Shown here one piece after another: positions 3,676 through 63,833 of a stretch of 64,000 bases of DNA. Location of the stretch: the sequence record OP380604.1; one strand, written 5' to 3'. The notes under the pieces were generated by a model, which saw only the letters and a list, made by a program, of their open reading frames with translations, made no database searches and was not told where the DNA came from. Both the position numbers and the translations under genes were made by a program. Every line of letters begins with the position of its first letter. Positions within the stretch are counted from its first letter, which is position 1.

Positions 3676-3704
3676 TTGTGGATCATTTCAAAGTATTCTA
3701 ATAT
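3676..3704 (+). promoter_or_regulatory. Putative sigma70-like promoter with -10 in hairpin loop
   Basis: TTGTGG-N17-TAATAT; arms 3687-3699/3705-3717. Confidence 0.45.
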
Positions 3705-3835
3705 AGAGTTCTTTGAATTGATTCAAGCGTTGCATCGTTTGAATATGTGGAGTTACCTTAGTAGGCCGTAGAGATACGTTGTCCGAAAGATAAGACGATG
3801 ATCCACGTTAAACGTTCATATTCGTCCCAGTTTAT

Positions 3836-3911
3836 AGGGGATTCGCCTAGTTGGCCCAAGGCACCGGGTTTGATCCCGGTATCACAAGTTCGAATCTTGT
3901 ATCCCCCGCCA
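3836..3911 (+). tRNA. tRNA-Gln(UUG)-like with 6-nt anticodon loop
   Basis: AGGGGAT/ATCCCCC, CCGGG-TTTGAT-CCCGG, T loop TTCGAAT, GCCA. Confidence 0.75.
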
Positions 3912-3919
3912 AATTTAGC

Positions 3920-3948
3920 TTGCAAAGGCTAAAATGAGCTGCTATGAT
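3920..3948 (+). promoter_or_regulatory. sigma70-like promoter with -10 in hairpin loop
   Basis: TTGCAA-N17-TATGAT; arms GAGCTGC/GTAGCTC. Confidence 0.55.
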
Positions 3949-4050
3949 TCCCGTAGCTCGTTAAATTATCAAACGGGAAGGTGATGCGCGTATGTAGCCA
4001 GAACGTAATGTTCAAGAGTCATGACGACATAGAGCCGTGTCGAAGAATTT

Positions 4051-4142
4051 GGAAGCGTGGCAGAGTATGGCTTATTGCAACTGACTTGAAATCAGTCAGT
4101 CGAGAAATCGGCCCGTGGGTTCAAATCCTACCGCTTCCGCCA
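4051..4142 (+). tRNA. tRNA-Ser(UGA)
   Basis: GGAAGCG/CGCTTCC, loop CTTGAAA, long variable arm, GCCA. Confidence 0.95.
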
Positions 4143-4166
4143 AATCAAACAATAGAGAGTTATATT

Positions 4167-4388
4167 ATGAAAGCGACAAAACAAGATCTTGAACTAGCAT
4201 CCCGTTTCGCTGATAAAGCTGATTCATACGGTTTCGCTACTACTCAAGGTGATGCCAAATGTACCAATCAACAAATCGAAAAGCTGCTAAAGCTTGGACT
4301 GATTAAAGTTACTCGCGGTGTTCACTGCATTGGTCAGAAAGATTTTGGTGGTTTTGTTCGAAGAGGCACTCACTATTGCAAAGCTTAA
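4167..4388 (+). CDS. Hypothetical protein (73 aa)
   Basis: GAGAG RBS, ATG 4167 (longer ORF-track start overlaps tRNA-Ser). Confidence 0.7.
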   Translation: MKATKQDLELASRFADKADSYGFATTQGDAKCTNQQIEKLLKLGLIKVTRGVHCIGQKDFGGFVRRGTHYCKA

Positions 4389-4498
4389 AACGAGAGATCG
4401 AGGAAAATGTAAGAGCCTCGTTCGAGTTATCCGGCAAGCGTGTTACTGATTCTCAATGGGAACAGATTAAACGAGTTGCTGAATACATCAAAGAACAT

Positions 4499-4586
4499 GG
4501 AGAAATGACAGAGAGGCCGAACGTAGCGGATTGCTAATTCGTAGGCCCGCAAGGGTCCGTGGGTTCGAATCCCACTTTCTCCTCCA
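4499..4586 (+). tRNA. tRNA-Ser(GCU)
   Basis: GGAGAAA/TTTCTCC, loop TTGCTAA, long variable arm, CCA. Confidence 0.92.
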
Positions 4587-4588
4587 AT

Positions 4589-4666
4589 GCACCAATGATG
4601 GGAATTGGTCTACCTGGCTGATTTAGATTCAGTCGCTTCTCGGTTCGAATCCGAGTTGGTGCACCA
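4589..4666 (+). tRNA. tRNA-Leu(UAG) with short variable loop
   Basis: GCACCAA/TTGGTGC, loop TTTAGAT, variable loop only CGCTT, ACCA. Confidence 0.88.
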
Positions 4667-4689
4667 AATAAATTGGTAGCCGCATACGT

Positions 4690-4696
4690 CTAAATA
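4690..4696 (+). promoter_or_regulatory. Putative late promoter (CTAAATA) for the endonuclease
   Basis: 16 nt upstream of ATG 4713. Confidence 0.55.
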
Positions 4697-4712
4697 ATAC
4701 AAATAAAGTATT

Positions 4713-5441
4713 ATGGAGAACGTTATGGCTACTCATAGAAAACCGGAACAAATAGAAACTACCGATCTTTGTAAATATGGATGCGGAAATATCGCAAAAT
4801 ATAAAAGTGTTGGTGGGAATCTGATGTGTGAATGTTCGTCAAATAAATGTCCGGTTAATATAAAAAAGAATTCAGAAAAACTAAAAGCACTATATGATTC
4901 TGGTATGAGAAAATCCGGAGCGGAGCTGTATAAATCTCTTAGCCACGACATCAAAACTAGAATGTCGTGGAGTAAAGGATTAACAAAAGAAACCAATTCC
5001 GAACTGGAGAGACCAACTTTGGTTGGTAAACGGTTTGGTGCATCATTGTACGGCCACACAGAAGAATCAAAGCGCAAGATTTCCATAGCCAGAACGGAGT
5101 GGCTAAAGAAGACTGAAAACCGAACGAATCTTGGAAGATTCAAAAAGTCTTGGATGGAAGAAACATTTGAATCGTATCTAAATGAAAATAAAATTACGGG
5201 TTGGATAGCAGAGAAACACTTCTACTCTCCTGTTACAAAGAAAAATTATTATGTTGACTTTCTCTTTCAAGAAAAGATGCTTATATTAGAATTGGATGGA
5301 ACCCAACATAGAAAGTCTATAGAACATGATAAACAAAGAGACTTGTGGTTCAATAGTATTGGATACAAAGTTATAAGAGTTCCGGTTGACGAATTCAAAC
5401 GGAGATTTTTCTCCGGGGTTGGGTTTATCGATCTACTGTAA
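4713..5441 (+). CDS. Free-standing homing-type endonuclease: Cys-rich N-terminus, NUMOD3-like motif, DUF559/Vsr-like PD-(D/E)XK domain
   Basis: CKYGCG..CECSSNKCP; GHTEESKRKISIAR; YVDFLFQEKMLILELDGTQH..DKQRDLWFNSIGYKVIRV. Confidence 0.82.
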   Translation: MENVMATHRKPEQIETTDLCKYGCGNIAKYKSVGGNLMCECSSNKCPVNIKKNSEKLKALYDSGMRKSGAELYKSLSHDIKTRMSWSKGLTKETNSELERPTLVGKRFGASLYGHTEESKRKISIARTEWLKKTENRTNLGRFKKSWMEETFESYLNENKITGWIAEKHFYSPVTKKNYYVDFLFQEKMLILELDGTQHRKSIEHDKQRDLWFNSIGYKVIRVPVDEFKRRFFSGVGFIDLL

Positions 5442-5446
5442 TAAAT

Positions 5447-5471
5447 AAAAGGGAGCTTCGGCTCCCTTTTT
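5447..5471 (+). terminator. Intrinsic terminator
   Basis: AAAAGGGAGC-TTCG-GCTCCCTTTTT. Confidence 0.85.
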
Positions 5472-5486
5472 CATTAGGAGTATAAT

Positions 5487-5873
5487 ATGAGTTTCAAAGA
5501 GTTTAAAGGCGATACAAACTCAAGTGTTGGCGAACTAATTTCCAAGCTTCTGAAAAGCGTGGCATACGTTCATCACCAACACCTGACTACTACTATCTAT
5601 AGCCGTCACAAAGCGCTCCAAGCGTATTACGAAGAACTTCCAGAGCTGATTGATAGCTTTGCAGAATGCGCTATCGCTCGTGGATATGCTCAGAGTTTTA
5701 CAGCTACTCATGCGGAAGTTGAAGTTGAAATGATGATTGACAATTTCCTGCAAGAGTGTACTATGGTGCATGAGTATTTGGAGACTAAACGCCATTTCGA
5801 TCTGGTGAATACACTGGAAGATATCATGACGTTTTTGACTTCGATTAGATACAAATTGAATCTTAAAGGTTGA
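5487..5873 (+). CDS. Ferritin/Dps-like four-helix protein
   Basis: HHQHLTTTIYSRHKALQAYYEELPELIDSFAE motif typical of T4-like phage Dps-like proteins. Confidence 0.7.
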   Translation: MSFKEFKGDTNSSVGELISKLLKSVAYVHHQHLTTTIYSRHKALQAYYEELPELIDSFAECAIARGYAQSFTATHAEVEVEMMIDNFLQECTMVHEYLETKRHFDLVNTLEDIMTFLTSIRYKLNLKG

Positions 5874-5899
5874 CTATCATTAGGAACTGTGTAATAATG
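5870..5899 (+). promoter_or_regulatory. Early-type promoter with inverted repeat around -10
   Basis: TTGACT..TAATAAT; arms TAGGAACTGT/ATGGTTCCTA. Confidence 0.65.
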
Positions 5900-5913
5900 G
5901 TTCCTATAAACAT

Positions 5914-5988
5914 GGCCCCGTAGCTGGAGGGTTCAAGCTGGCAGCTCATAACTGCTTGATGTGGGTTCGATTCCCACCGGGGCCACCA
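5914..5988 (+). tRNA. tRNA-Ile2(CAU) (lysidine type)
   Basis: GGCCCCG/CGGGGCC acceptor and loop CTCATAA resemble enterobacterial ileX; ACCA. Confidence 0.8.
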
Positions 5989-6009
5989 AATTCATCTGAG
6001 GAAATAATC

Positions 6010-6216
6010 ATGTTTTATGTTGTAATTCGTTCATTCTTTGATATAGAATACGGTGGAGAATACAAAGAGTTCTATGCCGTTCGTACCGACAAAAAGGTTG
6101 CTGAATCCGTTGTTGCTCGCGCTAGTGCTGAGTATGCCGAGAAGGGATATAGTGAAAGCTACCGATTCTCGATAGAAGAACATACCGAAGAAAGTTTTGT
6201 GGATTTGGACATATAA
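6010..6216 (+). CDS. Hypothetical protein
   Basis: GAGG RBS, ATG 6010. Confidence 0.7.
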   Translation: MFYVVIRSFFDIEYGGEYKEFYAVRTDKKVAESVVARASAEYAEKGYSESYRFSIEEHTEESFVDLDI

Positions 6217-6780: not shown

Positions 6781-6785
6781 ATAAT

Positions 6786-6870
6786 AGGTGTCAGTTGTAA
6801 GTCTCAATTGGAAGAGCTACTGGGCAGAAACCCAGTGGGGTGCGGGTTCGAGTCCTGCCTTCTGACGCCT
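6786..6870 (+). ncRNA. tRNA-like RNA with extended acceptor stem, 6-nt anticodon-position loop, no CCA
   Basis: AGGTGTCAG/CTGACGCCT, D arm CTC/GAG, ACTGGG-CAGAAA-CCCAGT, GCGGG-TTCGAGT-CCTGC; CTAAATA at 6777. Confidence 0.6.
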
Positions 6871-6886
6871 TTATTTGGAGATCTGT

Positions 6887-7048: not shown

Positions 7049-7103
7049 GATTAGTCATAAGGGACGGTTCTTTCATTGTTTTAACTAACGATGGAGAATC
7101 AAA

Positions 7104-7481: not shown

Positions 7482-7484
7482 ACA

Positions 7485-7509
7485 AAATCCCGCTTCGGCG
7501 GGATTTTTT
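7485..7509 (+). terminator. Intrinsic terminator (stem-loop/promoter cassette)
   Basis: ATCCCGC-TTCG-GCGGGATTTTTT. Confidence 0.85.
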
Positions 7510-7523
7510 ATTTCCAAAAAGTG

Positions 7524-7551
7524 TTGACACTCTTTTGTGACCTGATATGAT
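7524..7551 (+). promoter_or_regulatory. Early promoter with inverted repeat around -10
   Basis: TTGACA-N16-TATGAT; arms TGTGACC/GGTCACA. Confidence 0.8.
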
Positions 7552-7577
7552 GGTCACATAGAAACAGGAGGTTAATC

Positions 7578-13966: not shown

Positions 13967-14088
13967 GGGGAAGTAGCTCAGTGGTAGAGCAGTAGTCGCA
14001 AAAAGCGGAATCTGATTAAGATTCTTTACCGCAAACCCTTGCAAAATCAAACTGTTGGTCGTGGGTTCGAATCCCACCTTCTCCGCCA
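13967..14088 (+). ncRNA. tRNA-scaffold RNA C (54-nt insert in anticodon loop, G3.U70, GCCA end)
   Basis: GGGGAAG/CTTCTCC, D arm GCTC/GAGC, GTAGT/ACTGT stem, T arm GTGGG-TTCGAAT-CCCAC. Confidence 0.78.
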
Positions 14089-19807: not shown

Positions 19808-19875
19808 TTTACATAGAAAGTTGAAGTACAATCTGGGCCTATCGAGTAAGGCCCTTTTTCATTTATGAGGATATC

Positions 19876-20963: not shown

Positions 20964-23900
20964 ATGTTAACAACCAAACAATTATTCGAACGTCAAGAAG
21001 AAGAGGAATACCAACGCTTCTTGGCAGAAAATACCATGTATGATGCCGCAAGCAAGGCAACATTTGTTGATGATGAAACCGCGATCATGAATGCTTTCAT
21101 GTTCAACTTCATCGGTATTCTTGGTAGTTTCAATGCCGCTCGCCAGATGAATCACCTGTCTAGCCTGCGCAAGTATGAGCGTTATTTCAAGAGTGACGGC
21201 CAGTTGATGTTAAAGAATATCGGAGACGATAACCATAACATTTCTCTGGTGTTGAAACTCATGGCTGATAAGAAAATGTTTATCAGTGACGCTAAGGTAA
21301 GCGAAATGACCCGCTTCCTAGTTAAGTGTAAAGCTGGTGTTATTAATACCGTTGATGATGATATCGTCCGTGGTTGGGTAGCAAACATCAAATCTACCGC
21401 GCTGATGAACTTGCATCCTAAGCTCCGTGAGCTGATGAATAAGTTCAAGACCGGAGCTATTAGTCTGATCGACACTTCCAAAGAGTTGCGTCGAGTCTTG
21501 AAGAAATTCCCAGAAGCGGGTGAAGATTTGTGGACAGTTAGTATGTATGTTAAGTATGCGCGCCTTGCTGGTGTAAATACCGTAACTGTCGGTACTGCTG
21601 CTGGTGCAGGTGTTACATCGAATGTAGGTGACGATGATGACGACGACAAGAACGATAACGTGGCACAAGTCCACGCTTCTCCTGACGTCAATGACGTTAC
21701 CGATGATGCTGCTCCGAGCGTCCAGGACGAGCCTGTAGCTGTTCCTGTTCAGCCAGACTATCTGACATATGATCATGAAGCGGGATTGCTCCAATTCATT
21801 TCCAGTCAGATTGAAAAGTGCGTTGATTCTGATACCGGTCTGAGAGGATTACAGGCAATGTCACAGTTGGCTTATCCTACTGTTAGCAATCAAGGACATA
21901 TGGTAACTGGATTCGAGTTTGATCTTACCGACGAAGAACAAGTTGAAATCCATAACAAGTGGCGCCAACGTTATGTGTACACTGTTACCCAGTTGACTGA
22001 AATCGGAAAACGAATCGCTGCATTCCTGTTTATGGATAATTCCACGGGTGTATACGCAATCGAAGAAGCGTTGGAATTGAAAAACGTTGAGTTTCTACGC
22101 AACAACATTTCATTCTTCCGTGGGCTAAAAGAAAAGTACGGCATTCTTGGCAATCAAATTCCGTATTCTGCTTATCAGACTATGGCAATGACTTTTGGCA
22201 ATATTAAGTCTGACCCAACTTGCTGGCTATTCGGATTTAATACTACCGACGTTGCTCTTGAGATTACAAGCGGAAAACTAGGCAAAGCCATGCTTGATCA
22301 TTACAAGGGAAACAACGGCGATAGTATCGTAATTGGTATTCTGGGATACATGCGTGAAATGTCTCCTACTATCCGTCAGATGTATTTCAATTGCCTGTTG
22401 GAAGTAATTTCAACTGCTTATGTCTATATGATGTCCTATTCTAGCTATCTATCGGATGCTTTCAAATCTCTGTTGTTTGACGGCTCATTTGCTGATATGA
22501 TTGGTTGGGATACAGTAACGAGTTACGTGCTGGAAAGATACAAGCAAGTATATCCTCCGTATAAATGGGATTCTTGGAACGCAAATAGCAAAGTTTCGCT
22601 GTGTCGTCATGGACTTGAGTTTCTTTTGACTCCCGCGAATAAAGCTAACGCCGATTTCTCTTTCATCAACGATCATTGGACTAAACTGTACGCACTCGAT
22701 GACGCGGATTTCGTTGATACAATCAAGCGAGTAAAAGACTCTTATAAGGGTTCCGTTGAATATCCACTAGAAAACATGGACGCGGCAGATGTTTCTATGA
22801 TTGCTAAGTGCGTTATTCGTGCTCTTGAACTTGGTATTATTTTCCCGAATCGTGTTAATGCTATGGCTTATAACATGGTACCGAGCATGAAGCAGCGAGT
22901 TAGAGACGCATTGGATGCATATATCACAAAAGATACCAGCGTGGGTTCTTCTTGGGAAGAACAAGAAAACGCTTTGATGTCCGCTGCTTTCATTCATGGC
23001 GAAAGCGACGTTGCTGCTGGTGCTGAATATGTTATCAATAAAATCAAGGGAACTCCAAACGCGGGTGCTAAGACTCGAATTTTCTTTATGTCGAATCGTG
23101 GTACAATGCCTGAATACAGACAAAAGATTTTCCTTGGTGGATACAGAGCACTAGGCAAAGATCTGGACATTTACGATCTTGGCATCAATAAAAACAGTAA
23201 GTATGATAATCTTTACTCCGCTTTCCTGAAATATTATGATTTTGAGGGAGAAGACGCGGTAGAATTCATGAAGCTTGAAGTTAAGAACGGATTTAAGTTC
23301 TTTAACGCCGAGAACGGTAAATCTATCAGTGTTCGTGATCATAAGCAAGGTATGCAACAAGCATTGGTAGACATTATGACTGACGCCGTAGAAACTGATC
23401 CTGCTATCACGGACATTTTCTTCGATAACTTGGAAACATATTATCGTGGTAAAGTGCGAGATCAATTGGCTGCAATCAAGTTTGTTTACGGACAAGTTCT
23501 TGAGGGTCCAATTAACTTGTTCGACAAGTTGGATCGTCGTCGTGTTAAGCAGATGTTTGAGTTTAACGAAATTAACCCAACTGAGTTGGTGAAACAAGCG
23601 AAGATCAAACTCGGCAAGAATGAGAAGTTCACCGATTATATCAAGCGTGTGGAAGCCGAAGCTGCGAAGGGTGACGGTGTTGTTCCAAAAGTTAAAGCAG
23701 TTGACGACAATATTACCAACGAACAGAAATACCTGATTGGTAAGCATTTGATCGATAACTATTACGCTGGTAAACACGGTAACGTTTATCCTCTAATTCT
23801 GCGTAGTATGACCGTGAGTTTCCCAGACGGTGAATTCAAAAAGTTCATGCAAGAACAGATCGACGCTGGTAAACTTGAACAAGTCGTTCCATGTTTCCAC

Positions 23901-24602
23901 GGAACCGGTGGTATCGCTGCTAACATGATCTTGCGTTACGGCTTCAAGATTATTCCTAGCAAGGATTCATCTGTTGTTGGACGTATGCTTGGTGACGGGA
24001 TTTACTTTAGTAACAAGATTGATAAGATCTTGCAATACGTTGGTAACTCCGGTTATGGACGTCAAGCTGGTACCCGTGGGTATGTTTTCGAAATGGAATC
24101 TATTCTGGGTCAGCCTATCAAGGATTATCGTTCTGCTGGTGTGCCTAATGCAACATCAAAATCAAACGTAATCAGTCCAGAATGGGCAGTGTTTAGTCCA
24201 GAAAAACAACTGCGAATTCTAAAATGCTATGAGGTTGAACTGAATCGATACGACAAGTTCAAAGCATATCAAGAGAAAATGAAGGGAACATTGGAAGAAA
24301 GTAAAACAATGAAGTTCGGTGAACTACTTACCGAAGCCAAGCGTTCCGGTGTTCAAGATTATATCGTGTATTCTTTCCGAGGCGGCGAATTGCCGAGATT
24401 GAAGAACGGACGTCTTGAGTACGTGGAACCCAAGAAAGTCGATTTCCCTTCTGGGATCAAAATCGAAGGTGGCAACGAGGATGACGGATACGTTCGTGTC
24501 TATATCCCAGCCAAGCGCACAGAGTACCGCGAGTATTCAGCGTGTAAGAAGCTGAAAGGCAAAGAGTTGAAAGACTATCTGAAACTCACCGAACAGCTAT
24601 AA
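20964..24602 (+). CDS. Large Alt-like, probably virion-packaged protein with C-terminal PARP-type (H-Y-E) ADP-ribosyltransferase domain
   Basis: FHGTG..ILRYGF (His 23898), GRMLGDGIYFS (Tyr 24003), SPEWAVF (Glu 24180); acidic linker. Confidence 0.8.
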   Translation: MLTTKQLFERQEEEEYQRFLAENTMYDAASKATFVDDETAIMNAFMFNFIGILGSFNAARQMNHLSSLRKYERYFKSDGQLMLKNIGDDNHNISLVLKLMADKKMFISDAKVSEMTRFLVKCKAGVINTVDDDIVRGWVANIKSTALMNLHPKLRELMNKFKTGAISLIDTSKELRRVLKKFPEAGEDLWTVSMYVKYARLAGVNTVTVGTAAGAGVTSNVGDDDDDDKNDNVAQVHASPDVNDVTDDAAPSVQDEPVAVPVQPDYLTYDHEAGLLQFISSQIEKCVDSDTGLRGLQAMSQLAYPTVSNQGHMVTGFEFDLTDEEQVEIHNKWRQRYVYTVTQLTEIGKRIAAFLFMDNSTGVYAIEEALELKNVEFLRNNISFFRGLKEKYGILGNQIPYSAYQTMAMTFGNIKSDPTCWLFGFNTTDVALEITSGKLGKAMLDHYKGNNGDSIVIGILGYMREMSPTIRQMYFNCLLEVISTAYVYMMSYSSYLSDAFKSLLFDGSFADMIGWDTVTSYVLERYKQVYPPYKWDSWNANSKVSLCRHGLEFLLTPANKANADFSFINDHWTKLYALDDADFVDTIKRVKDSYKGSVEYPLENMDAADVSMIAKCVIRALELGIIFPNRVNAMAYNMVPSMKQRVRDALDAYITKDTSVGSSWEEQENALMSAAFIHGESDVAAGAEYVINKIKGTPNAGAKTRIFFMSNRGTMPEYRQKIFLGGYRALGKDLDIYDLGINKNSKYDNLYSAFLKYYDFEGEDAVEFMKLEVKNGFKFFNAENGKSISVRDHKQGMQQALVDIMTDAVETDPAITDIFFDNLETYYRGKVRDQLAAIKFVYGQVLEGPINLFDKLDRRRVKQMFEFNEINPTELVKQAKIKLGKNEKFTDYIKRVEAEAAKGDGVVPKVKAVDDNITNEQKYLIGKHLIDNYYAGKHGNVYPLILRSMTVSFPDGEFKKFMQEQIDAGKLEQVVPCFHGTGGIAANMILRYGFKIIPSKDSSVVGRMLGDGIYFSNKIDKILQYVGNSGYGRQAGTRGYVFEMESILGQPIKDYRSAGVPNATSKSNVISPEWAVFSPEKQLRILKCYEVELNRYDKFKAYQEKMKGTLEESKTMKFGELLTEAKRSGVQDYIVYSFRGGELPRLKNGRLEYVEPKKVDFPSGIKIEGGNEDDGYVRVYIPAKRTEYREYSACKKLKGKELKDYLKLTEQL

Positions 24603-24606
24603 AAAT

Positions 24607-24632
24607 AAAAGGCACCTTCGGGTGCCTTTTTT
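24607..24632 (+). terminator. Intrinsic terminator
   Basis: AAAAGGCACC-TTCG-GGTGCCTTTTTT. Confidence 0.9.
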
Positions 24633-24633
24633 G

Positions 24634-24661
24634 TTGACAGCAAGGATCAGCCTGTTATGAT
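24634..24661 (+). promoter_or_regulatory. Early promoter
   Basis: TTGACA-N16-TATGAT, leader GTCCACATCGAAAC. Confidence 0.8.
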
Positions 24662-24715
24662 GTCCACATCGAAACAACGCGACTCGTCGCAAAACAAAAC
24701 ACTGAGGAAAACATC

Positions 24716-25020: not shown

Positions 25021-25049
25021 TTGACATAAATCGGAGGCCATGTAATAAT
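25021..25049 (+). promoter_or_regulatory. Early promoter with inverted repeat around -10
   Basis: TTGACA..TAATAAT; arms GAGGCCAT/ATGGCCTC. Confidence 0.75.
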
Positions 25050-25089
25050 GGCCTCATTGAAACAAAGCAATCACTCTGAGGAAAACATC

Positions 25090-25443
25090 ATGAATCAAGC
25101 TCTGGTAGAACAAGTAAAATCCAAGATTGACCCGCGTCTGGTAGAGTATGTTCGAGTTAGATCGCGTAAATCTCTGGGCGAAGAAATCATGGAAGTGATC
25201 ATGGTTGGTGCTAAGATCGGTTGTTCTGATCTTGAGTTTTTCAACAATCGTTGGGCGCATTTCATGCTTCACGCCGGTGAAACCAAGTTCGAATCTCTTT
25301 GTGGTGATTGTAAGTGGAAATCTGGTGTTAAGTTTCCGGTTCTGCGGAAACAAAAGTCCCGTGAGTTGGCTTGTGACAAAATCGTGGACTTTGTTAATAA
25401 GAATGCACAGGCGTTTATTGACTGTTACAAACTAGAGGTATAA
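25090..25443 (+). CDS. Hypothetical protein
   Basis: TGAGG RBS, ATG 25090. Confidence 0.75.
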   Translation: MNQALVEQVKSKIDPRLVEYVRVRSRKSLGEEIMEVIMVGAKIGCSDLEFFNNRWAHFMLHAGETKFESLCGDCKWKSGVKFPVLRKQKSRELACDKIVDFVNKNAQAFIDCYKLEV

Positions 25444-33416: not shown

Positions 33417-33444
33417 TTGACCTTAGGTGTGGACATGTTATCAT
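33417..33444 (+). promoter_or_regulatory. Early promoter with perfect 10-bp inverted repeat across -10
   Basis: TTGACC-N16-TATCAT; TGTGGACATG-TTAT-CATGTCCACA. Confidence 0.8.
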
Positions 33445-33479
33445 GTCCACATCAAGACGAAACAACTGAGGAAAACATT

Positions 33480-33908: not shown

Positions 33909-33937
33909 TTGTAATCCAAATCGGTGCGATCTATAAT
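33909..33937 (+). promoter_or_regulatory. Early promoter with inverted repeat around -10
   Basis: TTGTAA-N17-TATAAT; arms GTGCGA/TCGCAC. Confidence 0.7.
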
Positions 33938-33970
33938 GTTCGCACTTTCAAATCAACTGAGGAATATACG

Positions 33971-38112: not shown

Positions 38113-38140
38113 TTGACACTCGTGGACATCCTGATATGAT
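38113..38140 (+). promoter_or_regulatory. Early promoter with perfect 9-bp inverted repeat around -10
   Basis: TTGACA-N16-TATGAT; GTGGACATC/GATGTCCAC. Confidence 0.8.
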
Positions 38141-38262
38141 GTCCACATCAAGACGAAATCGGACAAACAAAATGAAAGTCGCATTCTTTATAATGATGAT
38201 GGGATTTGCAATAGCGTATGCCGAAGCCCTGTCAAGTGCTCTGAATCAACTTAATTGAGGAA

Positions 38263-39830: not shown

Positions 39831-39858
39831 TTGACTGTGTGGCTTGTTACTGTATAAT
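39831..39858 (+). promoter_or_regulatory. Early promoter with 12-bp inverted repeat across -10
   Basis: TTGACT-N16-TATAAT; TGTGGCTTGTTA/TAATGAGCCACA. Confidence 0.85.
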
Positions 39859-39893
39859 GAGCCACATCAAGACAACAACGAGAGAAAATCATC

Positions 39894-41336: not shown

Positions 41337-41364
41337 TTTGCTAATGGGCACTTTAATTAGTGTC

Positions 41365-41429
41365 CATTGTCGAAAAAAGTAGTTGACCGACAAAATCATC
41401 CTGTTAATATATCCACATCGAAAACAAAC
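41365..41429 (+). repeat. 65-bp stem-loop/promoter cassette, copy 1 (copy 2 at 41965-42029)
   Basis: 64/65 identical; TTGACC-N16-TAATAT. Confidence 0.9.
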
Positions 41430-41449
41430 CCCAAAATGAGGTAATCAAA

Positions 41450-41932: not shown

Positions 41933-41964
41933 AAGATTTGCTAATGTGCGTTAGAAATAGCGCA

Positions 41965-42029
41965 CATTGTCGAAAAAAGTAGTTGACAGACAAAATCATC
42001 CTGTTAATATATCCACATCGAAAACAAAC
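41965..42029 (+). repeat. 65-bp stem-loop/promoter cassette, copy 2
   Basis: TTGACA-N16-TAATAT; 600 bp from copy 1. Confidence 0.9.
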
Positions 42030-42042
42030 TGAGAGATTAAAA

Positions 42043-42681: not shown

Positions 42682-42737
42682 GTGTTGCTGATGGGCACTC
42701 TAACGAGTGCTCATTGTCAAAAACAAGAGGAATCATC

Positions 42738-48810: not shown

Positions 48811-48839
48811 TTTACAAAACACGGAAACGGTGATATCCT
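48811..48839 (+). promoter_or_regulatory. Promoter with 12-bp inverted repeat across -10
   Basis: TTTACA-N17-TATCCT; AAACGGTGATAT/ATATCACTGTTT. Confidence 0.7.
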
Positions 48840-48869
48840 TATATCACTGTTTTCATTATTGGAAAGAAC

Positions 48870-53429: not shown

Positions 53430-53457
53430 TTGACAACTGGTCCCGTTCATGTAGAAT
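53430..53457 (+). promoter_or_regulatory. Early promoter with 10-bp inverted repeat across -10
   Basis: TTGACA-N16-TAGAAT; GGTCCCGTTC/GAATGGGACC. Confidence 0.8.
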
Positions 53458-53486
53458 GGGACCTATCTTATTAAGAGGAATACATT

Positions 53487-55666: not shown

Positions 55667-55694
55667 TTGCACTGGTGGCTATATCTGTTATTAT
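55667..55694 (+). promoter_or_regulatory. Early promoter with perfect 9-bp inverted repeat around -10
   Basis: TTGCAC-N16-TATTAT; GTGGCTATA/TATAGCCAC. Confidence 0.8.
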
Positions 55695-55728
55695 AGCCAC
55701 ATCGAAACAAAACATTGAGGAAAACATC

Positions 55729-55905
55729 ATGCAAAACAAAGTCGCTATCCAAGTTCTGGAAGAACAAATCAAATATCTGCAAAATATGATCGAATCCTCT
55801 TATGAAGGCGAGTGGACTCCTGCCGGTGCAGATCAACGCGCTATCTGGGAAAAAGAAATCGAAAGTATTTTGCATTCTATCTATGTTCTGGAGACTAACG
55901 TATGA
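55729..55905 (+). CDS. Hypothetical protein
   Basis: TGAGG RBS, ATG 55729. Confidence 0.7.
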   Translation: MQNKVAIQVLEEQIKYLQNMIESSYEGEWTPAGADQRAIWEKEIESILHSIYVLETNV

Positions 55906-56207
55906 CTAACAAACAGTTGATGGTCAAAGCTATTAAGAAATTGATGACCAAAGAAGGGATCGAATATCTTCACGTTGAGATTGAAACGATTACCGTGACA
56001 TTTGGCAACAAGATTAAGCTTTCGGTACGTGTCCGAGATCATGAGCAATCCGAACGGTTGGCTAAACTGTTCCGAGATCAAACCAACTTTAGTTGTAGTT
56101 CTACGTCCAGCTTTAAGAAACATGCATGTACAAAGGTAACAACTATTTTCTATGATGAAAAAGAATTGAAAATAGCTACTGACTTTTGGGAGGATTTGTG
56201 CTGTTAA
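55902..56207 (+). CDS. Hypothetical protein
   Basis: 101 aa. Confidence 0.7.
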   Translation: MTNKQLMVKAIKKLMTKEGIEYLHVEIETITVTFGNKIKLSVRVRDHEQSERLAKLFRDQTNFSCSSTSSFKKHACTKVTTIFYDEKELKIATDFWEDLCC

Positions 56208-56461
56208 CTGATATCATGTTCAAAATGTCGCAACGCCGCAAAGAAGAGTTGGCAAAGCGATTGAAAGAACTTGGCTTTACTTTCGAGAAATACCGGGATT
56301 GTGTTGTGCTTGAGTTCGCTGGTGTGTCATACTGGGTTACACCACATCCGGTTAAGTTTGTGGTAACTAGCAATGAAGATCAACGTTCGTTTGAGTTCTA
56401 TCACGTTCGAAATGTTGTTAGTTTTCTTAACACCCTAAAAGAAATGAACAATGATCTATGA
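56198..56461 (+). CDS. Hypothetical protein (start uncertain)
   Basis: GGAGG RBS before GTG 56198. Confidence 0.6.
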   Translation: MLLTDIMFKMSQRRKEELAKRLKELGFTFEKYRDCVVLEFAGVSYWVTPHPVKFVVTSNEDQRSFEFYHVRNVVSFLNTLKEMNNDL

Positions 56462-56591
56462 AAGTTGTGATTAGACTCTTGATTGCATTTATTGCCGCTT
56501 ATGGTGTATTCTTTGCAAGCCCGGAGCAAATGCGGGCGCTGTTTGCTCTGATTATTTGTGTTAATGCTGTTAACTGTTGGATGAATTGATT

Positions 56592-57521
56592 ATGATTGAA
56601 CTCTGGAAAATTAACGAAAACGGCTGTATCGAAGCTTTGCAAGCTTTTCATTTTTACAATCCAGCTGGAAGAGATATTTTTATCAATCAAGGTGATATCG
56701 GCGCCAAAATCGAAAACATCGTGGAAATGCCAAAGACAACTGAGAAATTCTGGGTTGGAAAGGGCACAGTTTTCAGTAATCATTTTTTGTCTGGAAAACT
56801 CAGAGAATGTTATATTGGTGAAAACTGCCATATAGGTGCTCGTTCTCGCATTGATGACGGTGTTATCATTATGGATAACGTTTATATTGATGATAACGTT
56901 ACGATTAAGCGCGATGTTGTAATCGGAGAAAACGTCAGAATCGGATATAATACCTCAATCTATGAGCGTTGTCGAATTCGAAATAATGTTCGGATTTCTC
57001 CGTCCTGTACTATTGGATCCGGAGCGGAAATTCGTCAATATGCTAAACTGTTTGACGGTGTTAAAGTTCGAAACTCCATGATTGGTGAACACTGCGAAAT
57101 CAAACGAAGTGTTCATATTTTCGAATCCCATATCGGCAATCTTAGCGTAATCGAACAATATGCGGTGTTGGCCGCTGTTCATTGTTGCGAAGGTACAAAG
57201 ATTGGAGAGTGTGTTAAACTGTTCAAGATCAATCTGCCGTCATATGCGAATTTGAACGTTGGCGATCATTTTATGCTTTCCGGGTGTGGTAAGCGCAGTC
57301 GCAATGTTCTGTTTTTCACTCACAACAACAAAGTTATGGTAAGTGCTGGCTGTCAAGTTGGTATTACCGTAGATCACTTCAAAAAGCGGATTGCTGGTGC
57401 GCACGGCACTACCGACGAAAGCGCGAAGATCTACAAGCAGATGATGCCTGTTATTAACGCGATTGTCAAGGATTTGTGGTGTAAGATTATTAAGAAAAAA
57501 ATTCGAAATTTCTTTTCTTAA
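56592..57521 (+). CDS. Left-handed beta-helix (hexapeptide repeat) protein
   Basis: Runs of [IV]G[ED]N.. hexapeptides (IGENCH IGARSR IDDGVI). Confidence 0.82.
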   Translation: MIELWKINENGCIEALQAFHFYNPAGRDIFINQGDIGAKIENIVEMPKTTEKFWVGKGTVFSNHFLSGKLRECYIGENCHIGARSRIDDGVIIMDNVYIDDNVTIKRDVVIGENVRIGYNTSIYERCRIRNNVRISPSCTIGSGAEIRQYAKLFDGVKVRNSMIGEHCEIKRSVHIFESHIGNLSVIEQYAVLAAVHCCEGTKIGECVKLFKINLPSYANLNVGDHFMLSGCGKRSRNVLFFTHNNKVMVSAGCQVGITVDHFKKRIAGAHGTTDESAKIYKQMMPVINAIVKDLWCKIIKKKIRNFFS

Positions 57522-57524
57522 TGC

Positions 57525-57552
57525 TTGATGATGTGGCTCGTTACTGTATAAT
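57525..57552 (+). promoter_or_regulatory. Early promoter with ~15-bp inverted repeat across -10
   Basis: TTGATG-N16-TATAAT; TGATGTGGCTCGTTA/TAATGAGCCACATCA. Confidence 0.8.
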
Positions 57553-57584
57553 GAGCCACATCAAGACAACAAAGAGAAAGTATC

Positions 57585-57839
57585 ATGACCAAAGAAATCG
57601 ATCAAGTTATCATCTACTCTTATGAAGCTGTTGTGGATCAAGATGAAAACGATGAGGATGTTTTGGAAGAACACTATGGTGTAAAAGCAACTGGTATTGC
57701 CGAAGAAGTTTTTGGTCAAGAGATTTTCGAAGATTTCGAAGATAGTATTGTAGATGCACACGAAACCGCACAACAAATCGCCGATGCATGTGATATCGAA
57801 ATCACTTGGGAATGTTACAAACCGGGTTGGGCTAAATGA
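57585..57839 (+). CDS. Hypothetical acidic protein
   Basis: 84 aa. Confidence 0.7.
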   Translation: MTKEIDQVIIYSYEAVVDQDENDEDVLEEHYGVKATGIAEEVFGQEIFEDFEDSIVDAHETAQQIADACDIEITWECYKPGWAK

Positions 57840-58114
57840 TATTCGAGATCATTAAAGAAAGAAAATGCGAAAAACTGGTTGCTTTCTTTAAATCGTTGGG
57901 ATACAATGGTTACAGATCGATAGCGTTTCCTAGCAACTCTGTTTATATCAGAATGCCAGTATCGAAAATGATAGTTGTTTATACCAAAGTTTTCGGTTAC
58001 ACTGTTCATTATTACAATGACGTTACTGATAACATGGAGCCAACTATCTTCGAAGACGCGGATCTGGAATTCATCGAAAGCATTATCAAATCAATCGAAA
58101 ACTATGAGGATTAA
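57836..58114 (+). CDS. Hypothetical protein
   Basis: 92 aa. Confidence 0.7.
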   Translation: MIFEIIKERKCEKLVAFFKSLGYNGYRSIAFPSNSVYIRMPVSKMIVVYTKVFGYTVHYYNDVTDNMEPTIFEDADLEFIESIIKSIENYED

Positions 58115-58117
58115 ATC

Positions 58118-58531
58118 ATGAAAAAAGTAAGCGTTAAGAATCTGAAAGCCGGTAAGACTGTTTATTATGTAAGCGCACTTGGCGAAAACTCTTTTGTTAC
58201 CAAGTATCTGATTACCGGTCGTCCTGTTCATCATACATATGTTGATGGCTCAAAATCCGATTCTCTGTTTGTTCCGTGTCGTATGGTATACAGCAACGGT
58301 GAAATTCAAGCCATCAATGATGCACTGCGATCCTTGAACAGTTTCAGTCTGCTGGATTGCAATGTAGAGCGCCAGAACGGGTATAACAAACATCGTGCAT
58401 TCTACAACAAGCGTACCGCGGATCGTTACTGTGAACTGTGCAAGCAAACCGGTATCAAGTTTGAATCTAATATGTCGTGGGACTGGGAAATGGATTACCC
58501 GCTCGAAATGGACGATTATTACGAAGATTGA
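58118..58531 (+). CDS. Hypothetical protein
   Basis: 137 aa, GAGG RBS. Confidence 0.75.
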   Translation: MKKVSVKNLKAGKTVYYVSALGENSFVTKYLITGRPVHHTYVDGSKSDSLFVPCRMVYSNGEIQAINDALRSLNSFSLLDCNVERQNGYNKHRAFYNKRTADRYCELCKQTGIKFESNMSWDWEMDYPLEMDDYYED

Positions 58532-58543
58532 TTTAAAAAGTTG

Positions 58544-58572
58544 TTGACTAACGCCAAGAGACATGCGATAAT
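58544..58572 (+). promoter_or_regulatory. Early promoter with 8-bp inverted repeat across -10
   Basis: TTGACT-N17-GATAAT; AGAGACAT/ATGTCTCT. Confidence 0.75.
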
Positions 58573-58604
58573 GTCTCTATCAAATAACGAATGAGGAATA
58601 CATC

Positions 58605-61236: not shown

Positions 61237-61265
61237 TTGACGATATGATGGGAGTATGAAATAAT
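61237..61265 (+). promoter_or_regulatory. Early promoter with 11-bp inverted repeat across -10
   Basis: TTGACG-N17-AATAAT; GATGGGAGTAT/ATGCTCCCATC. Confidence 0.75.
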
Positions 61266-61289
61266 GCTCCCATCTTAAAGGAGATTGTT

Positions 61290-61526
61290 ATGAAGGGTCA
61301 ACGTCGAGTATTTTGTTGGAAACGAAATCACATTGATTTAACTGAACTGAGAGACGCGATACACTGGCACTTGAAAATGCAATCCAGTATCGGTTTCCGC
61401 GAAGAGGATTATTTCCTTGAGTCAGTATATAGGCATATAGTTGCCGGTGGCGAAGATGTCATGGAGTTCGCTATAGAGCGTGGCCATGAAGCTTGGTTGA
61501 AAGATTTTATGGAGTGTATGAAATGA
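61290..61526 (+). CDS. Hypothetical protein
   Basis: 78 aa, AAGGAG RBS. Confidence 0.7.
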   Translation: MKGQRRVFCWKRNHIDLTELRDAIHWHLKMQSSIGFREEDYFLESVYRHIVAGGEDVMEFAIERGHEAWLKDFMECMK

Positions 61527-62113
61527 AAATTCTTATTACTGATGTGGACAAAGCCCGCATCAATCGCGCAAAAGCTGATGCCATGAAATTGCTCGGTGTG
61601 TTTGAAGCCAAAGATCGCGTTAATGCGATGGCTATCATTGACTATATGACAAAGCAATGGACTATGGCTATCCGTCAAAGCAACACTACCGTTAATCTGC
61701 AACTAGCGGATCAACGCGGATTGTCGGATGAAACTATTCACGAAATCGCCATGCTACAAGCGTATCGCGAACGGCACCTCCAATCGATTGAGAATGATTA
61801 TCGGACACTGGAACACTATGCGCCTAGTACCGAGAAAGCTTTGATTCGAGAGTCTAACGACAAATACCTTGCGGAGAAGCTTGCTTGGATTCGTCATATT
61901 GAATTCCAATTGCAAGAGAAATGGGGATTTGAGCTTAACGCTAGCCATCATGTATACAACGTGCCACACTGCACTTGTCCGAAACATCGTGCTGGTGACC
62001 CATTCTATCGAACTGACCGCAACTGTCCGATGCACAATAGTAGAATGAACGCACTGGTAAAAACTTTTTTCGAAAAAATTGAAAAAAGCTATTGCATTCC
62101 AATGCTGGACTGA
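61523..62113 (+). CDS. Hypothetical protein with C-terminal Cys/His cluster
   Basis: HCTCPKH..NCPMH; ATG 61523. Confidence 0.75.
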   Translation: MKILITDVDKARINRAKADAMKLLGVFEAKDRVNAMAIIDYMTKQWTMAIRQSNTTVNLQLADQRGLSDETIHEIAMLQAYRERHLQSIENDYRTLEHYAPSTEKALIRESNDKYLAEKLAWIRHIEFQLQEKWGFELNASHHVYNVPHCTCPKHRAGDPFYRTDRNCPMHNSRMNALVKTFFEKIEKSYCIPMLD

Positions 62114-62119
62114 TATTAT
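62092..62119 (+). promoter_or_regulatory. Early promoter
   Basis: TTGCAT-N16-TATTAT, leader GCCACATCGAAAC. Confidence 0.75.
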
Positions 62120-62154
62120 AGCCACATCGAAACGAAACATATGAGGAATAAATC

Positions 62155-62535
62155 ATGAAAGCAGCAATCGAGCAAATGATCAAAGAAATGAACGAGTTCG
62201 GTGAACATCAATATTTTGACATCATTATTCCTGATATGCGCAAGCGTTATACGGAAGAACACGTTGCTACTTTCTTGGAGCACAACTTGAACCGCAACGT
62301 GTATAGCGTTGAGTACGGTAAAAAGAATGCTCGCGTTGTTCGATCTGACTGGAATGGTAGCTCTCGGAGTGTTGTTTGGTTCGTCGATATGACAACCGGT
62401 GATATTCTTAAAGCTAACGGCTGGAAAGCTGCTTCTAAGTATGTTCGCGGTAACGTAAGCAACTGGAAAGCTGCCATGCATCCAGCTAGTGCTCAAAGCG
62501 TATTCGGTTTTATTGCTATTCGGGACGGTCGCTAA
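62155..62535 (+). CDS. Hypothetical protein
   Basis: 126 aa; SVVWFVDMTTGDILKANGWKAA motif common in phage early proteins. Confidence 0.75.
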   Translation: MKAAIEQMIKEMNEFGEHQYFDIIIPDMRKRYTEEHVATFLEHNLNRNVYSVEYGKKNARVVRSDWNGSSRSVVWFVDMTTGDILKANGWKAASKYVRGNVSNWKAAMHPASAQSVFGFIAIRDGR

Positions 62536-62762
62536 TGAAAGCACGTATTAAAGATTTCGGTGTAGGCGTCAATGCCTACACTTCTTCCGACGAAAGTGAT
62601 GAACTGTTTGAACTCGTTGGTATTCACGGTTTGCATGTATTATTCTATCACGCGGAACAAAAGACTGTTTTTGATGTGGAAGAACTTGAAAACGGTTATA
62701 GCTTTGAGTTAAACTGTATCCTGTTTGAAGATATCCCTGCTAAATTTATCGAACTGATCTGA
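62535..62762 (+). CDS. Hypothetical protein
   Basis: 75 aa, TAATG coupling. Confidence 0.7.
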   Translation: MKARIKDFGVGVNAYTSSDESDELFELVGIHGLHVLFYHAEQKTVFDVEELENGYSFELNCILFEDIPAKFIELI

Positions 62763-62769
62763 GGTTGTT

Positions 62770-63150
62770 ATGTTTATCAAAAAAGAAGATATGAAAGCGT
62801 CCATGGCTGTTTACATGAATATGATCAAAGATGGTCATATTGAAGGCGTGAAAGTCAAAGAGATCTACACTATCCCCGTGATGATCAAGAAAACCGCGTA
62901 TGAACTGGACATGAAGATTGTTGGTGGTGTTCCATTTTGCGCTGGCGTTGTTCGAGAGATCAAAGTTCCGAATGTGAACTTCGAGCGTGAACTGATTGGC
63001 TATGACGTTGTTGTGGTAGCTAAACAGAAACCGGTAAAGCATGATTTTCGTATGACCGAAGGTTGCATTATGAAAACCTCCGATATGTTGAAAGCGTATG
63101 TATACGCGAAACAAAATATGCCGAAAAAGGTCGAAAAACACTTGCACTGA
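62770..63150 (+). CDS. Hypothetical protein
   Basis: 126 aa, GAGG RBS. Confidence 0.75.
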   Translation: MFIKKEDMKASMAVYMNMIKDGHIEGVKVKEIYTIPVMIKKTAYELDMKIVGGVPFCAGVVREIKVPNVNFERELIGYDVVVVAKQKPVKHDFRMTEGCIMKTSDMLKAYVYAKQNMPKKVEKHLH

Positions 63151-63164
63151 TTTCAATTAAACCC

Positions 63165-63185
63165 AAGGCCCTTCGGGGCCTTTTT
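63165..63185 (+). terminator. Intrinsic terminator
   Basis: AAGGCCC-TTCG-GGGCCTTTTT. Confidence 0.85.
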
Positions 63186-63199
63186 CGTATGGAGAAAAA

Positions 63200-63661
63200 A
63201 TGAAAATTAAAATTGTTAATATGTCTATGTTCAAGGCATACAAAGATCGTCCGGAAATGACTGCGAATCAGGTAATCGAGTTATATCACGCCTACGTGTG
63301 TGGAACGACTTTGGACGCAATGCTTGATGTAGACAGTGGAGACGTATCGGTATATCTAGGAAATGATTTGGTAGTCGTTCCAATGCGTTTTGTGCAAATG
63401 CCGTTTTATGTTACACCTGATAAATTCAATGACGACTTTATATCTAGCGGTTGTATTGTCAATCTAGGTAAAACGGTTAACATCGTAATGAGTTCAGATA
63501 GAACACCACAAGGTATCAAGAACACACTACAGTGGGCTAGTCCGAACTGTGATGTTACCCGAGATAGTCATATGAAAACTGATCGTGGTAACTGGTATCG
63601 AATCGAACTGAATTTTGAACGTGGTGAGATTGAGTTATCACCTACCGTACTACGTTACTAA
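63200..63661 (+). CDS. Hypothetical protein
   Basis: 153 aa, GGAG RBS. Confidence 0.75.
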   Translation: MKIKIVNMSMFKAYKDRPEMTANQVIELYHAYVCGTTLDAMLDVDSGDVSVYLGNDLVVVPMRFVQMPFYVTPDKFNDDFISSGCIVNLGKTVNIVMSSDRTPQGIKNTLQWASPNCDVTRDSHMKTDRGNWYRIELNFERGEIELSPTVLRY

Positions 63662-63795
63662 TCGAAGATTGCGGCGTTAGCCGCTAACTCGTTGAATAGT
63701 AAGAAGAAGACAATTTAGATTCTCATATAAGATATATAAGAGATTTTATTTTGTCTTTTTGTAACATCTAGCTCGCTACGCTCGCAATCTTCGAT
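63661..63795. repeat. Nested-palindrome intergenic element, copy 2
   Basis: Perfect 13-bp terminal IR ATCGAAGATTGCG/CGCAATCTTCGAT; core shared with 20792-20924. Confidence 0.8.
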
Positions 63796-63805
63796 GAAAA
63801 AAGTA

Positions 63806-63833
63806 TTGACATCTGATTTAAGAAGAGTATTAT
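63806..63833 (+). promoter_or_regulatory. Early promoter
   Basis: TTGACA-N16-TATTAT. Confidence 0.7.

Follow-up and report, generated by a model that had tools for sequence, protein, structure and literature searches.

Promoter-early stem-loops (PeSLs) were described in the coliphages RB49 and phi1 (Arbiol et al. 2010, PMC2839356). Each combines a sigma70-consensus early promoter, preceded by AT-rich DNA, with a stem-loop and with the Shine-Dalgarno sequence and start codon of the downstream gene; they cluster in hyperplastic regions, where they separate small genes whose function is unknown (PMC2839356). The position of the stem-loop defines five subclasses, in one of which it overlaps the -10 box; the PeSL211/210 stem-loop lowered lacZ expression to about the same extent as the rrnB T1 terminator, and recombination between PeSLs gave rise to mini-circles, one crossover being mapped inside the loop of a stem-loop (PMC2839356). 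PeSL-like sequences in phage Aeh1 were mentioned in the same report (PMC2839356), and the PeSLs of T4/PST and KVP40/nt-1 have their stem-loop immediately ahead of the promoter (Comeau et al. 2014, PMC4122927). Here we analyzed the last 64 kb of Aeromonas phage avDM12-TAAL (the window: 64,000 nucleotides, positions 167191-231190 at the right end of record OP380604.1), and found a genuine hairpin with covarying arms around the -10 box of about a third of its early promoters. These elements belong to a published PeSL subclass; for this phage group, PeSLs had so far received no more than a mention.

The phage avDM12-TAAL is a T4-like phage of the Aeh1/Ah1 type. The 3.6-kb open reading frame (ORF) at 20964-24602 is 100% identical to avDM12-TAAL (OP380604.1), 99.1% to phage Ah1 and 83.6% to Aeh1. 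About 128 coding sequences (CDS) are annotated in the window, all on the + strand and nearly all as 'hypothetical protein', and the syntenic stretch in Aeh1 is the early tk / nrdC.11 / nadV / tRNA region. The window is an early region of small plus-strand genes without known function.

Hairpins around the -10 box of early promoters

An earlier reading of the window from its letters alone (the original prediction) had reported that at least 15 early promoters sit inside inverted repeats, with the left arm in the spacer and the right arm over the -10 box. We defined the promoter set independently of these arm positions. A generic sigma70 matrix gave the seed sites on which a phage-specific position weight matrix was trained; its parts were the UP element with the -35 box, the -10 hexamer, and positions +1 to +8, while the spacer and discriminator were excluded. 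On the + strand, this matrix found 34 sites at a score of at least 12 and 33 at the set threshold of 14; on the - strand, it found no site even at a score of 12. Five strong generic sigma70 hits near gene starts were added to the 33, giving 38 promoters, all on the + strand. They take the form TTGACA-N16/17-TAnnAT, mostly with AAAAAG-type tracts upstream. The order within a cassette is an A-rich UP region, TTGACA, a spacer of 16-17 nt, TAnnAT, an ATC(G/A)A(A/G)AC start region, a Shine-Dalgarno sequence, and ATG; in most cassettes the Shine-Dalgarno sequence is of GAGG type and lies with its ATG 24-55 nt past the -10 box.

As the fold measure we used the RNAfold minimum free energy (MFE) of the spacer, the -10 box and the following 12 nt, and an MFE of -10 kcal/mol or better was called strong. 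Two null models were run 500 times each: in the shuffle null, the spacer and the downstream bases were shuffled separately, and in the swap null, each spacer was joined to the right half of another promoter. The results showed a mean MFE of -7.13 kcal/mol for the 38 promoters, compared with -3.16 +/- 0.33 for the shuffles and -3.65 +/- 0.33 for the partner swaps. Strong hairpins were found at 13 of the 38, compared with a mean of 0.33 (maximum 3) in the shuffle null and 1.3 (maximum 6) in the swap null, which places the inverted repeats of the original prediction well above the null expectation; z-scores for nine hairpins folded singly ranged from -3.4 to -7.5. Some arms belong to a GTGG...CCAC sequence family, and the swap null showed that most arms pair with their own partner only. 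The sites with hairpins, including one weak promoter-like site, are as follows.

5870-5906, + strand: p5870; -35 box 5870-5875, -10 box AATAAT 5893-5898; hairpin 5881-5906 (TAGGAACTGT/ATGGTTCCTA), MFE -11.8, z -4.8.
7524-7562, + strand: p7524; hairpin 7531-7562 with the core TGTGACC/GGTCACA.
25021-25055, + strand: p25021; -10 box 25044-25049; hairpin 25034-25055 (GAGGCCAT/ATGGCCTC), MFE -15.2.
33417-33453, + strand: p33417; -10 box 33439-33444; 12-bp hairpin 33426-33453, MFE -20.0, z -7.5.
33909-33946, + strand: p33909; -10 box 33932-33937; hairpin 33923-33946 (GTGCGA/TCGCAC), MFE -10.6, and -14.3 in each of Aeh1 and Ah1.
38113-38146, + strand: p38113; -10 box 38135-38140; hairpin 38122-38146 (GTGGACATC/GATGTCCAC), MFE -14.1; the upstream stop codon adjoins the -35 box.
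39831-39867, + strand: p39831; -10 box 39853-39858; 13-bp hairpin 39837-39867 with three G.U pairs.
48811-48851, + strand: weak promoter-like site; hairpin 48826-48851 (AAACGGTGATAT/ATATCACTGTTT), weak -10 box TATCCT, T in 5 of the next 8 bases.
53430-53463, + strand: p53430; -10 box TAGAAT 53452-53457; hairpin 53439-53463 (GGTCCCGTTC/GAATGGGACC), MFE -17.6.
55667-55700, + strand: p55667; -10 box 55689-55694; hairpin 55675-55700 (GTGGCTATA/TATAGCCAC); left edge of a block replaced relative to Ah1.
57525-57561, + strand: p57525; -10 box 57547-57552; 13-bp hairpin 57531-57561; near-copy of the p39831 cassette.
58544-58578, + strand: p58544; -10 box GATAAT 58567-58572; hairpin 58557-58578 (AGAGACAT/ATGTCTCT).
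61237-61274, + strand: p61237; -10 box AATAAT 61260-61265; 11-bp hairpin 61247-61274 (GATGGGAGTAT/ATGCTCCCATC), MFE -18.6, z -6.75.

Thirteen of the 15 arm sites in the original prediction were recovered (5881, 7536, 25034, 33428, 33924, 38122, 39838, 48825, 53439, 55675, 57529, 58557, and 61247). Of the other two, the site at 3936, within the tRNA cluster, combines a weaker promoter with a hairpin of -9.9, and that at 3687 has a weak promoter and a deviant geometry, with a 17-nt loop and the right arm entirely downstream of the -10 box. The register of the hairpins is nearly fixed. With the left arm placed in the spacer, the loop takes in the bases that immediately precede the -10 box together with its first 3-4 bases; the right arm begins in its last 2-3 bases and crosses the discriminator, to end 6-12 nt beyond the box (about -1 to +5). 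The absence of a U-tract, originally stated for all sites, holds for 11 of the 13 strong hairpins, which have 0-3 T in the next 8 nt, and fails for the other two; the 48825 hairpin may be a plain terminator. A terminator scan of the + strand called none of the 13, in agreement with the earlier view that they are not canonical intrinsic terminators, and an Rfam search at the gathering threshold found no known RNA family over the hairpins, returning tRNAs only.

The same promoter and hairpin method was applied to positions 114100-164018 of RB49. It found spacer-type stems (TTGACA ggggatc..gatcccc TATACT), and also a stem overlapping the -10 box (TTGACA ...gggagtag TAAGAT actccc ATCAAGAC) in the same register as the hairpins of the window. 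The original prediction had taken the architecture to be undescribed; this does not hold, as a subclass with the stem-loop over the -10 box was already reported (Arbiol et al. 2010, PMC2839356). The cassettes of the window share with the PeSLs of RB49 and phi1 a sigma70 promoter preceded by A-rich sequence, a stem-loop whose left arm occupies the spacer while its right arm covers the discriminator and the end of the -10 box, stems that include G-T pairs, a 3' end formed by a Shine-Dalgarno sequence and ATG, a location among small genes without known function in hyperplastic early regions, an association with indels, and the start-region motif CATCAAGAC or CATCGAAAC. They differ in lineage, belonging to the Aeh1/Ah1 group with an Aeromonas host, and in their diverse arms, whereas RB49 uses mostly GGGG..CCCC or GGGAGTA..ACTCCC. 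Furthermore, stems lying wholly in the spacer, the type to which the stem-loop tested by Arbiol et al. belongs (position 40725 in the reverse complement of L005, the RB49 sequence), are essentially absent from the window, and many of its cassettes use a separate upstream TTCG-tetraloop terminator instead. The window shows the following features of a PeSL: promoter, stem-loop, Shine-Dalgarno sequence with start codon, hyperplastic location (judged within the window) and indel boundaries.

Several details of the promoters were observed in passing. The start region after the discriminator is kept as CATC(G/A)A(A/G)AC in the promoters of the window (e.g., 33445-33460, 24662-24675, and 55695-55708), and the same motif occurs in the PeSLs of RB49, a distant coliphage lineage (L005 reverse complement, e.g., 5273, 32013, and 42517); this conservation could reflect a start-site preference, a leader function, or cassette spread. 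The 5' leaders are A/C-rich and G-poor as far as the Shine-Dalgarno sequence. In CDS 25048-25443, the annotated start codon precedes the predicted transcription start and falls into the right arm and -10 box of p25021; translation more probably begins at the in-frame ATG at 25090, which follows GAGGAAAACATC. At p19804 (intergenic region 19808-19875), the -10 box of a promoter-like match is followed by a canonical terminator (GGGCCTATCGAGTAAGGCCC + T5), so the promoter is probably spurious and the region terminator-only.

Hairpin presence and the end of the upstream gene

The 38 sites were sorted by inspection into three classes, according to the position of the stop codon and to recognisable terminators upstream. 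In the compact class, where the stop codon lies no more than 15 nt from the -35 box or overlaps it, 12 of 17 promoters have a strong hairpin and two more a moderate one (-6.7 and -6.8). Where a separate stem-loop stands between the stop codon and the -35 box, a strong embedded hairpin was found at one promoter of ten (p7524); the separate stem-loops comprise eight canonical TTCG-tetraloop terminators with T-runs and two hairpins without a U-tract. The 11 promoter-like sites inside an upstream ORF include no strong hairpin. Fisher tests gave p = 0.0044 for compact compared with terminator-preceded promoters and p = 2.4e-5 for compact promoters compared with the rest. The class pattern is the same in Aeh1, Ah1, and phiAS5, and promoters without a hairpin in the window are hairpin-free in all relatives. 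When the doubtful p19804 is left out, a stem-loop is either embedded in (12 compact) or placed just upstream of (10) 22 of the 26 intergenic promoters.

Because hairpin presence tracks the upstream layout, the stem-loop behaves as an element of the end of the upstream gene, and the hairpins are not a general promoter device. The proposal of a genome-wide structural control of initiation is thus not upheld, the hairpin being almost confined to promoters that abut an upstream stop codon and absent after a separate terminator or hairpin, p7524 apart. At p7524, the sole strong hairpin with a canonical terminator also upstream (CCCGCTTCGGCGGG + T6, intergenic region 7482-7577), the hairpin is lost in Aeh1 (-12.0 to -3.1). 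The embedded hairpin was unrelated to the best MFE in the 75 nt upstream of the -35 box (Spearman -0.22, p = 0.19; Fisher p = 1.0). Chance folds of -8 to -13 in long coding windows make this measure noisy, and for that reason the explicit classes were adopted. In RB49, a single promoter has an upstream terminator, too few for the either/or test. The alternative layout is exemplified by the following feature.

24603-24675, + strand: p24634; canonical terminator AAAAGGCACCTTCGGGTGCCTTTT at 24607-24630, then a promoter without an embedded hairpin.

The embedded-hairpin MFE of p24634 is -4.2 or weaker in the window and in all relatives. The same terminator-then-promoter layout occurs at p11634, p14467, p31140, p35874, p54946, and p60284. 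Such cassettes (p24634, p31140, p35874, and others) resemble the PeSLs of T4/PST and KVP40/nt-1, which flank variable genes in the hyperplastic regions of those phages; the embedded stem-loop of the window, in contrast, surrounds the -10 box, whereas theirs stands just upstream of the promoter. As stable RNA hairpins at gene ends, the embedded stem-loops are also like intrinsic terminators and interchangeable with true ones in the window, but differ from them in the U-tract, the tails being A/C-rich, e.g., ATCAAGAC. The promoters p41383 and p41983 are preceded by an upstream hairpin without a U-tract. Gene ends at 41337-41449, 41933-42042, and 42682-42737 bear three copies of one hairpin that lacks a U-tract and measures about 35 nt (TGCTAATGGGCAC...GTGTCCATTGTCG, with variants); two of the copies are followed by the near-identical cassettes p41383 and p41983, and the arrangement looks like a locally duplicated gene cassette.

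Compensatory changes and strand bias of the stems

Covariation was analyzed by orthologue pairs and a chimera test on the orthologous promoters of Aeh1, Ah1, and phiAS5, not by a fixed consensus over all cassettes, because the stem register varies by up to 3 nt among cassettes. All 12 strong hairpins of the compact class have an MFE of -8 or better in Aeh1. Among the changed pairs in these 12 hairpins relative to Aeh1, 14 still pair after a one-sided change, five pair after a two-sided change, and seven break; counted over all hairpins, 13 pairs are broken, six of them in p7524. The change rate relative to Aeh1 is 0.18 at stem positions and 0.18 at unpaired positions. Stems that change as fast as unpaired positions point to a constraint on structure and not on sequence. 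In the chimera test, cognate arms gave a mean of -14.7 kcal/mol, compared with -11.4 for half-chimeras of the window and Aeh1 (one-sided Wilcoxon p = 0.016), and the largest losses were found at p33417, p53430, p55667, p58544, and p61237. These results show that the covariation is real, and that pairing is kept while arm sequence is not, as had been proposed, with compensatory changes in Ah1, Aeh1, and phiAS5.

The cleanest compensatory change is at p58544, where an A-T pair in the window is C-G in Aeh1, Ah1, and phiAS5 and the remaining arms, the loop and the -10 box are unchanged; its chimeras fall from -11/-12.9 to about -5.8. At p33417, the arms in Aeh1 and Ah1 are GTGGCTAT/ATAGCCAC, with energies of -18.6 and -16.9, and the window/Aeh1 chimeras reach about -10. 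The arms of p53430 are also different in Aeh1 and Ah1 (AGGCTCGTTC/GAATGAGCCT) with the MFE still at -17.6, and its chimeras gave -5.9 and -12.9. Distinct arm sets, all paired, were found for p61237 in Aeh1, Ah1, and phiAS5 (-21.5, -16.6, and -15.2), and phiAS5 has other arms at p25021 (GTGGACAT/ATGTCCAC) with pairing retained (-14.1). The hairpin of p39831 is kept in Aeh1, Ah1, and phiAS5; p57525 has an MFE of -17.7 in the window, -17.5 in Aeh1, and -20.9 in phiAS5. At p5870, which is located upstream of tRNA-Met, a G.U pair is replaced by A-U in Aeh1. The avDM12-TAAL clade is small: the protein encoded downstream of p53430 has no relatives in viral_contigs, and that downstream of p58544 has matches there only from Ah1, Aeh1, and PX29.

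Of the 132 pairs in the predicted stems, 121 are Watson-Crick and 11 are G.U. Owing to the latter, 12 of the 13 hairpins are more stable on the top strand than on its reverse complement (Wilcoxon p = 0.0005; p = 0.027 for the Aeh1 orthologues), which confirms the statement that the imperfections favour the top strand. At p39831, for example, the top strand reaches -15.2 and the bottom strand -10.9. Hairpin energies range from -11 to -20 kcal/mol as RNA and from -4 to -11 as single-stranded DNA (ssDNA).

Some further features of the window lie apart from the hairpins. ARAGORN called 19 tRNAs, spanning 198-5988. At 13967-14085, Rfam called a tRNA of 119 nt (54.3 bits), unannotated in OP380604.1 and without an ARAGORN call; the syntenic gap of Aeh1, between the same neighbour genes, is annotated with a 122-nt tRNA-Val (CAC), and the element may be an intron-bearing or otherwise long tRNA gene. 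At 3836-3911, ARAGORN called a tRNA with an undefined two-base anticodon ('tg'), supported by Rfam (47.6 bits) and unannotated in the record; it is placed as is tRNA-Gln (UUG) in the Aeh1 cluster, between tRNA-Pro and tRNA-Ser, and its anticodon loop may be atypical. The intergenic region 6781-6886 contains the 3' half of a tRNA-like element, T-arm and acceptor (GGGTTCGAGTCCTGCC...), where neither ARAGORN nor Rfam called a tRNA, and may be a tRNA remnant. The last 13 letters of the window, and of the GenBank record, are all A (63988-64000); rather than phage sequence, this run may be an artefact of assembly or of the end.

Proposed role of the stem-loop and its alternatives

We consider it fairly probable that the elements are PeSL-type composite cassettes, in which the stem-loop serves the upstream transcript and is merged into the next promoter where intergenic space is absent. 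Each small early gene would have its own strong sigma70-type promoter and one stem-loop at the 3' end of the preceding gene. Where intergenic space is present, a separate terminator or hairpin would stand upstream of the -35 box, and where the stop codon abuts the -35 box, the stem-loop would be folded into the promoter. The arms are free to covary because both lie largely outside the sequence constraints of sigma70. Since the predicted +1 follows all or nearly all of the stem, a promoter's own transcript cannot form the full hairpin; only RNA read through from upstream promoters can, and this RNA is where the hairpin most likely acts. Candidate actions are attenuation, pausing or termination of the read-through polymerase, a protective 3' stem-loop that would shield the upstream mRNA from exonucleases, and an endonuclease site formed by the stem with the adjoining A/C-rich single-stranded start region. 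Each gene cassette would thereby become an autonomous expression unit, and the repeated cassettes might, as a side effect, provide homology for modular gene shuffling. A role at the RNA level is favoured because of the G.U bias of the top strand, the exclusion between embedded hairpin and terminator, the absence of hairpins inside ORFs, and the weak ssDNA energies. Among the three mechanisms first offered for the hairpins, sites acting in read-through RNA thus remain plausible, while a melting aid and a switch dependent on supercoiling or single-stranded DNA-binding protein (SSB) are disfavoured.

Several points weigh against this account of a stem-loop serving the upstream transcript. Classical intrinsic termination is unlikely, because 11 of the 13 hairpins lack a U-tract and none was called on the + strand. 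The only published terminator assay concerned one stem-loop of RB49/phi1 that lies wholly in the spacer and does not overlap the -10 box (PMC2839356). The classes on which the either/or pattern is built were assigned after the sequences had been seen, and coding constraint alone could explain why promoters inside ORFs have no hairpin. Finally, whole-cassette exchange, rather than stepwise compensation, may account for part of the covariation between phages, since arms within 30 nt of each other can be replaced jointly; such exchange cannot explain p58544.

Exchange also underlies an alternative that we regard as unlikely, in which the stem-loop is part of a mobile recombining cassette, as a recombination signal or an inherited passenger, and has no RNA role, its arm diversity arising by exchange. 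Indel and replacement boundaries do fall at cassettes. Relative to Ah1, five of nine alignment gaps have at least one breakpoint in a cassette, two replaced blocks (55702-58533 and 61273-63837 of the window) are flanked by cassettes on both sides, with p61237 at the left edge of one, and two Ah1 deletions start directly after p31140 and p54946. Relative to Aeh1, nine of 22 gaps are at cassettes, and cassettes +/- 15 nt make up 5.2% of the window. This pattern matches PeSL-mediated modular shuffling, though gene-level indels tend to end in intergenic DNA anyway. Repeat families (p39831~p57525 and p41383~p41983) and secondary BLAST hits that join different promoters point the same way, as do the PeSL mini-circles with one crossover inside the loop (PMC2839356). 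However, homologous recombination requires identity and not pairing; the swap null showed that arms differ widely among cassettes with pairing retained, and at p58544 a single pair changed in a compensatory manner with the arms otherwise unchanged. Terminator exclusion and the G.U bias of the top strand are also left unexplained. A recombination role is compatible with the proposed service to the upstream transcript, as a plausible second, non-exclusive function.

Control at the DNA level seems to us very doubtful. Here a cruciform or a hairpin of the non-template strand would aid or block melting of the -10 box and thus act as a supercoiling- or SSB-dependent switch on early promoters. Such control would be suited by the nearly fixed register at which the -10 box falls in the loop and right arm, and by the restriction of tolerated G.T pairs to the non-template strand, the one to which sigma region 2 binds as well. 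Yet 25 of the 38 promoters are hairpin-free, including many of the best-scoring ones, and hairpin presence follows the upstream layout and not promoter quality. A cruciform needs both strands paired, and the bottom strand is weaker in 12 of 13; the ssDNA hairpins reach merely -4 to -11 kcal/mol with loops of 4-9 nt, which is small against the cost of unpairing about 30 bp of duplex. The invariant -7 T, paired in the stem, would moreover be expected to hinder sigma binding.

Two other hairpin mechanisms were rejected. A promoter of the N4 type, which a virion RNA polymerase recognises as a DNA hairpin and which lacks sigma70 -35/-10 elements, does not fit near-consensus sigma70 hexamers at a spacing of 16-17 nt and a set of mostly hairpin-free promoters, although no search for a virion RNA polymerase gene was made. 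In the T4 genes e, soc, 49, and I-TevI, a promoter also lies inside a hairpin, as in the cassettes of the window; there the internal promoter is late, the hairpin sequesters the downstream ribosome-binding site, and read-through transcripts contain the whole hairpin while the promoter's own transcripts lack the 5' arm. Occlusion of this type was rejected because the stems of the window end 6-12 nt past the -10 box and the Shine-Dalgarno sequence is farther downstream and unpaired.

There is a slim chance that the hairpin is a transcription-coupled switch on the promoter itself, in which read-through lets the transiently single-stranded non-template strand fold or a nascent RNA hairpin stalls polymerase over the next promoter. 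If so, upstream traffic would tune compact early promoters down or up; this would amount to promoter interference, or insulation, of a structural kind that is specific to phage gene cassettes in tight packing. Binding of the inverted repeat, as an operator, by a dimeric protein (for instance a repressor or shut-off factor of the phage early genes) can practically be set aside, for although dyad symmetry over the -10 box is the classical operator layout and GTGG..CCAC is common to several cassettes, the arms are unrelated among cassettes (e.g., GAGGCCAT, AGAGACAT, GGTCCCGTTC, GATGGGAGTAT, and TAGGAACTGT), non-cognate arms do not pair, orthologues alter the sequence and keep the pairing, and G.T pairs are meaningless for a duplex operator.

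The finding reveals no new principle of promoter control. It adds the Aeh1/Ah1/phiAS5 group of T4-like Aeromonas phages to the phages with PeSL cassettes, the subclass overlapping the -10 box included. As read here, PMC2839356 and PMC4122927 report neither quantitative enrichment of the hairpins over null models, nor compensatory covariation across four lineages, nor the either/or relation of embedded and upstream stem-loops. For these phages, the results suggest that each small early gene forms a self-contained unit with its promoter and 3' stem-loop; this would help to explain how such genes are shuffled without disturbing their neighbours.

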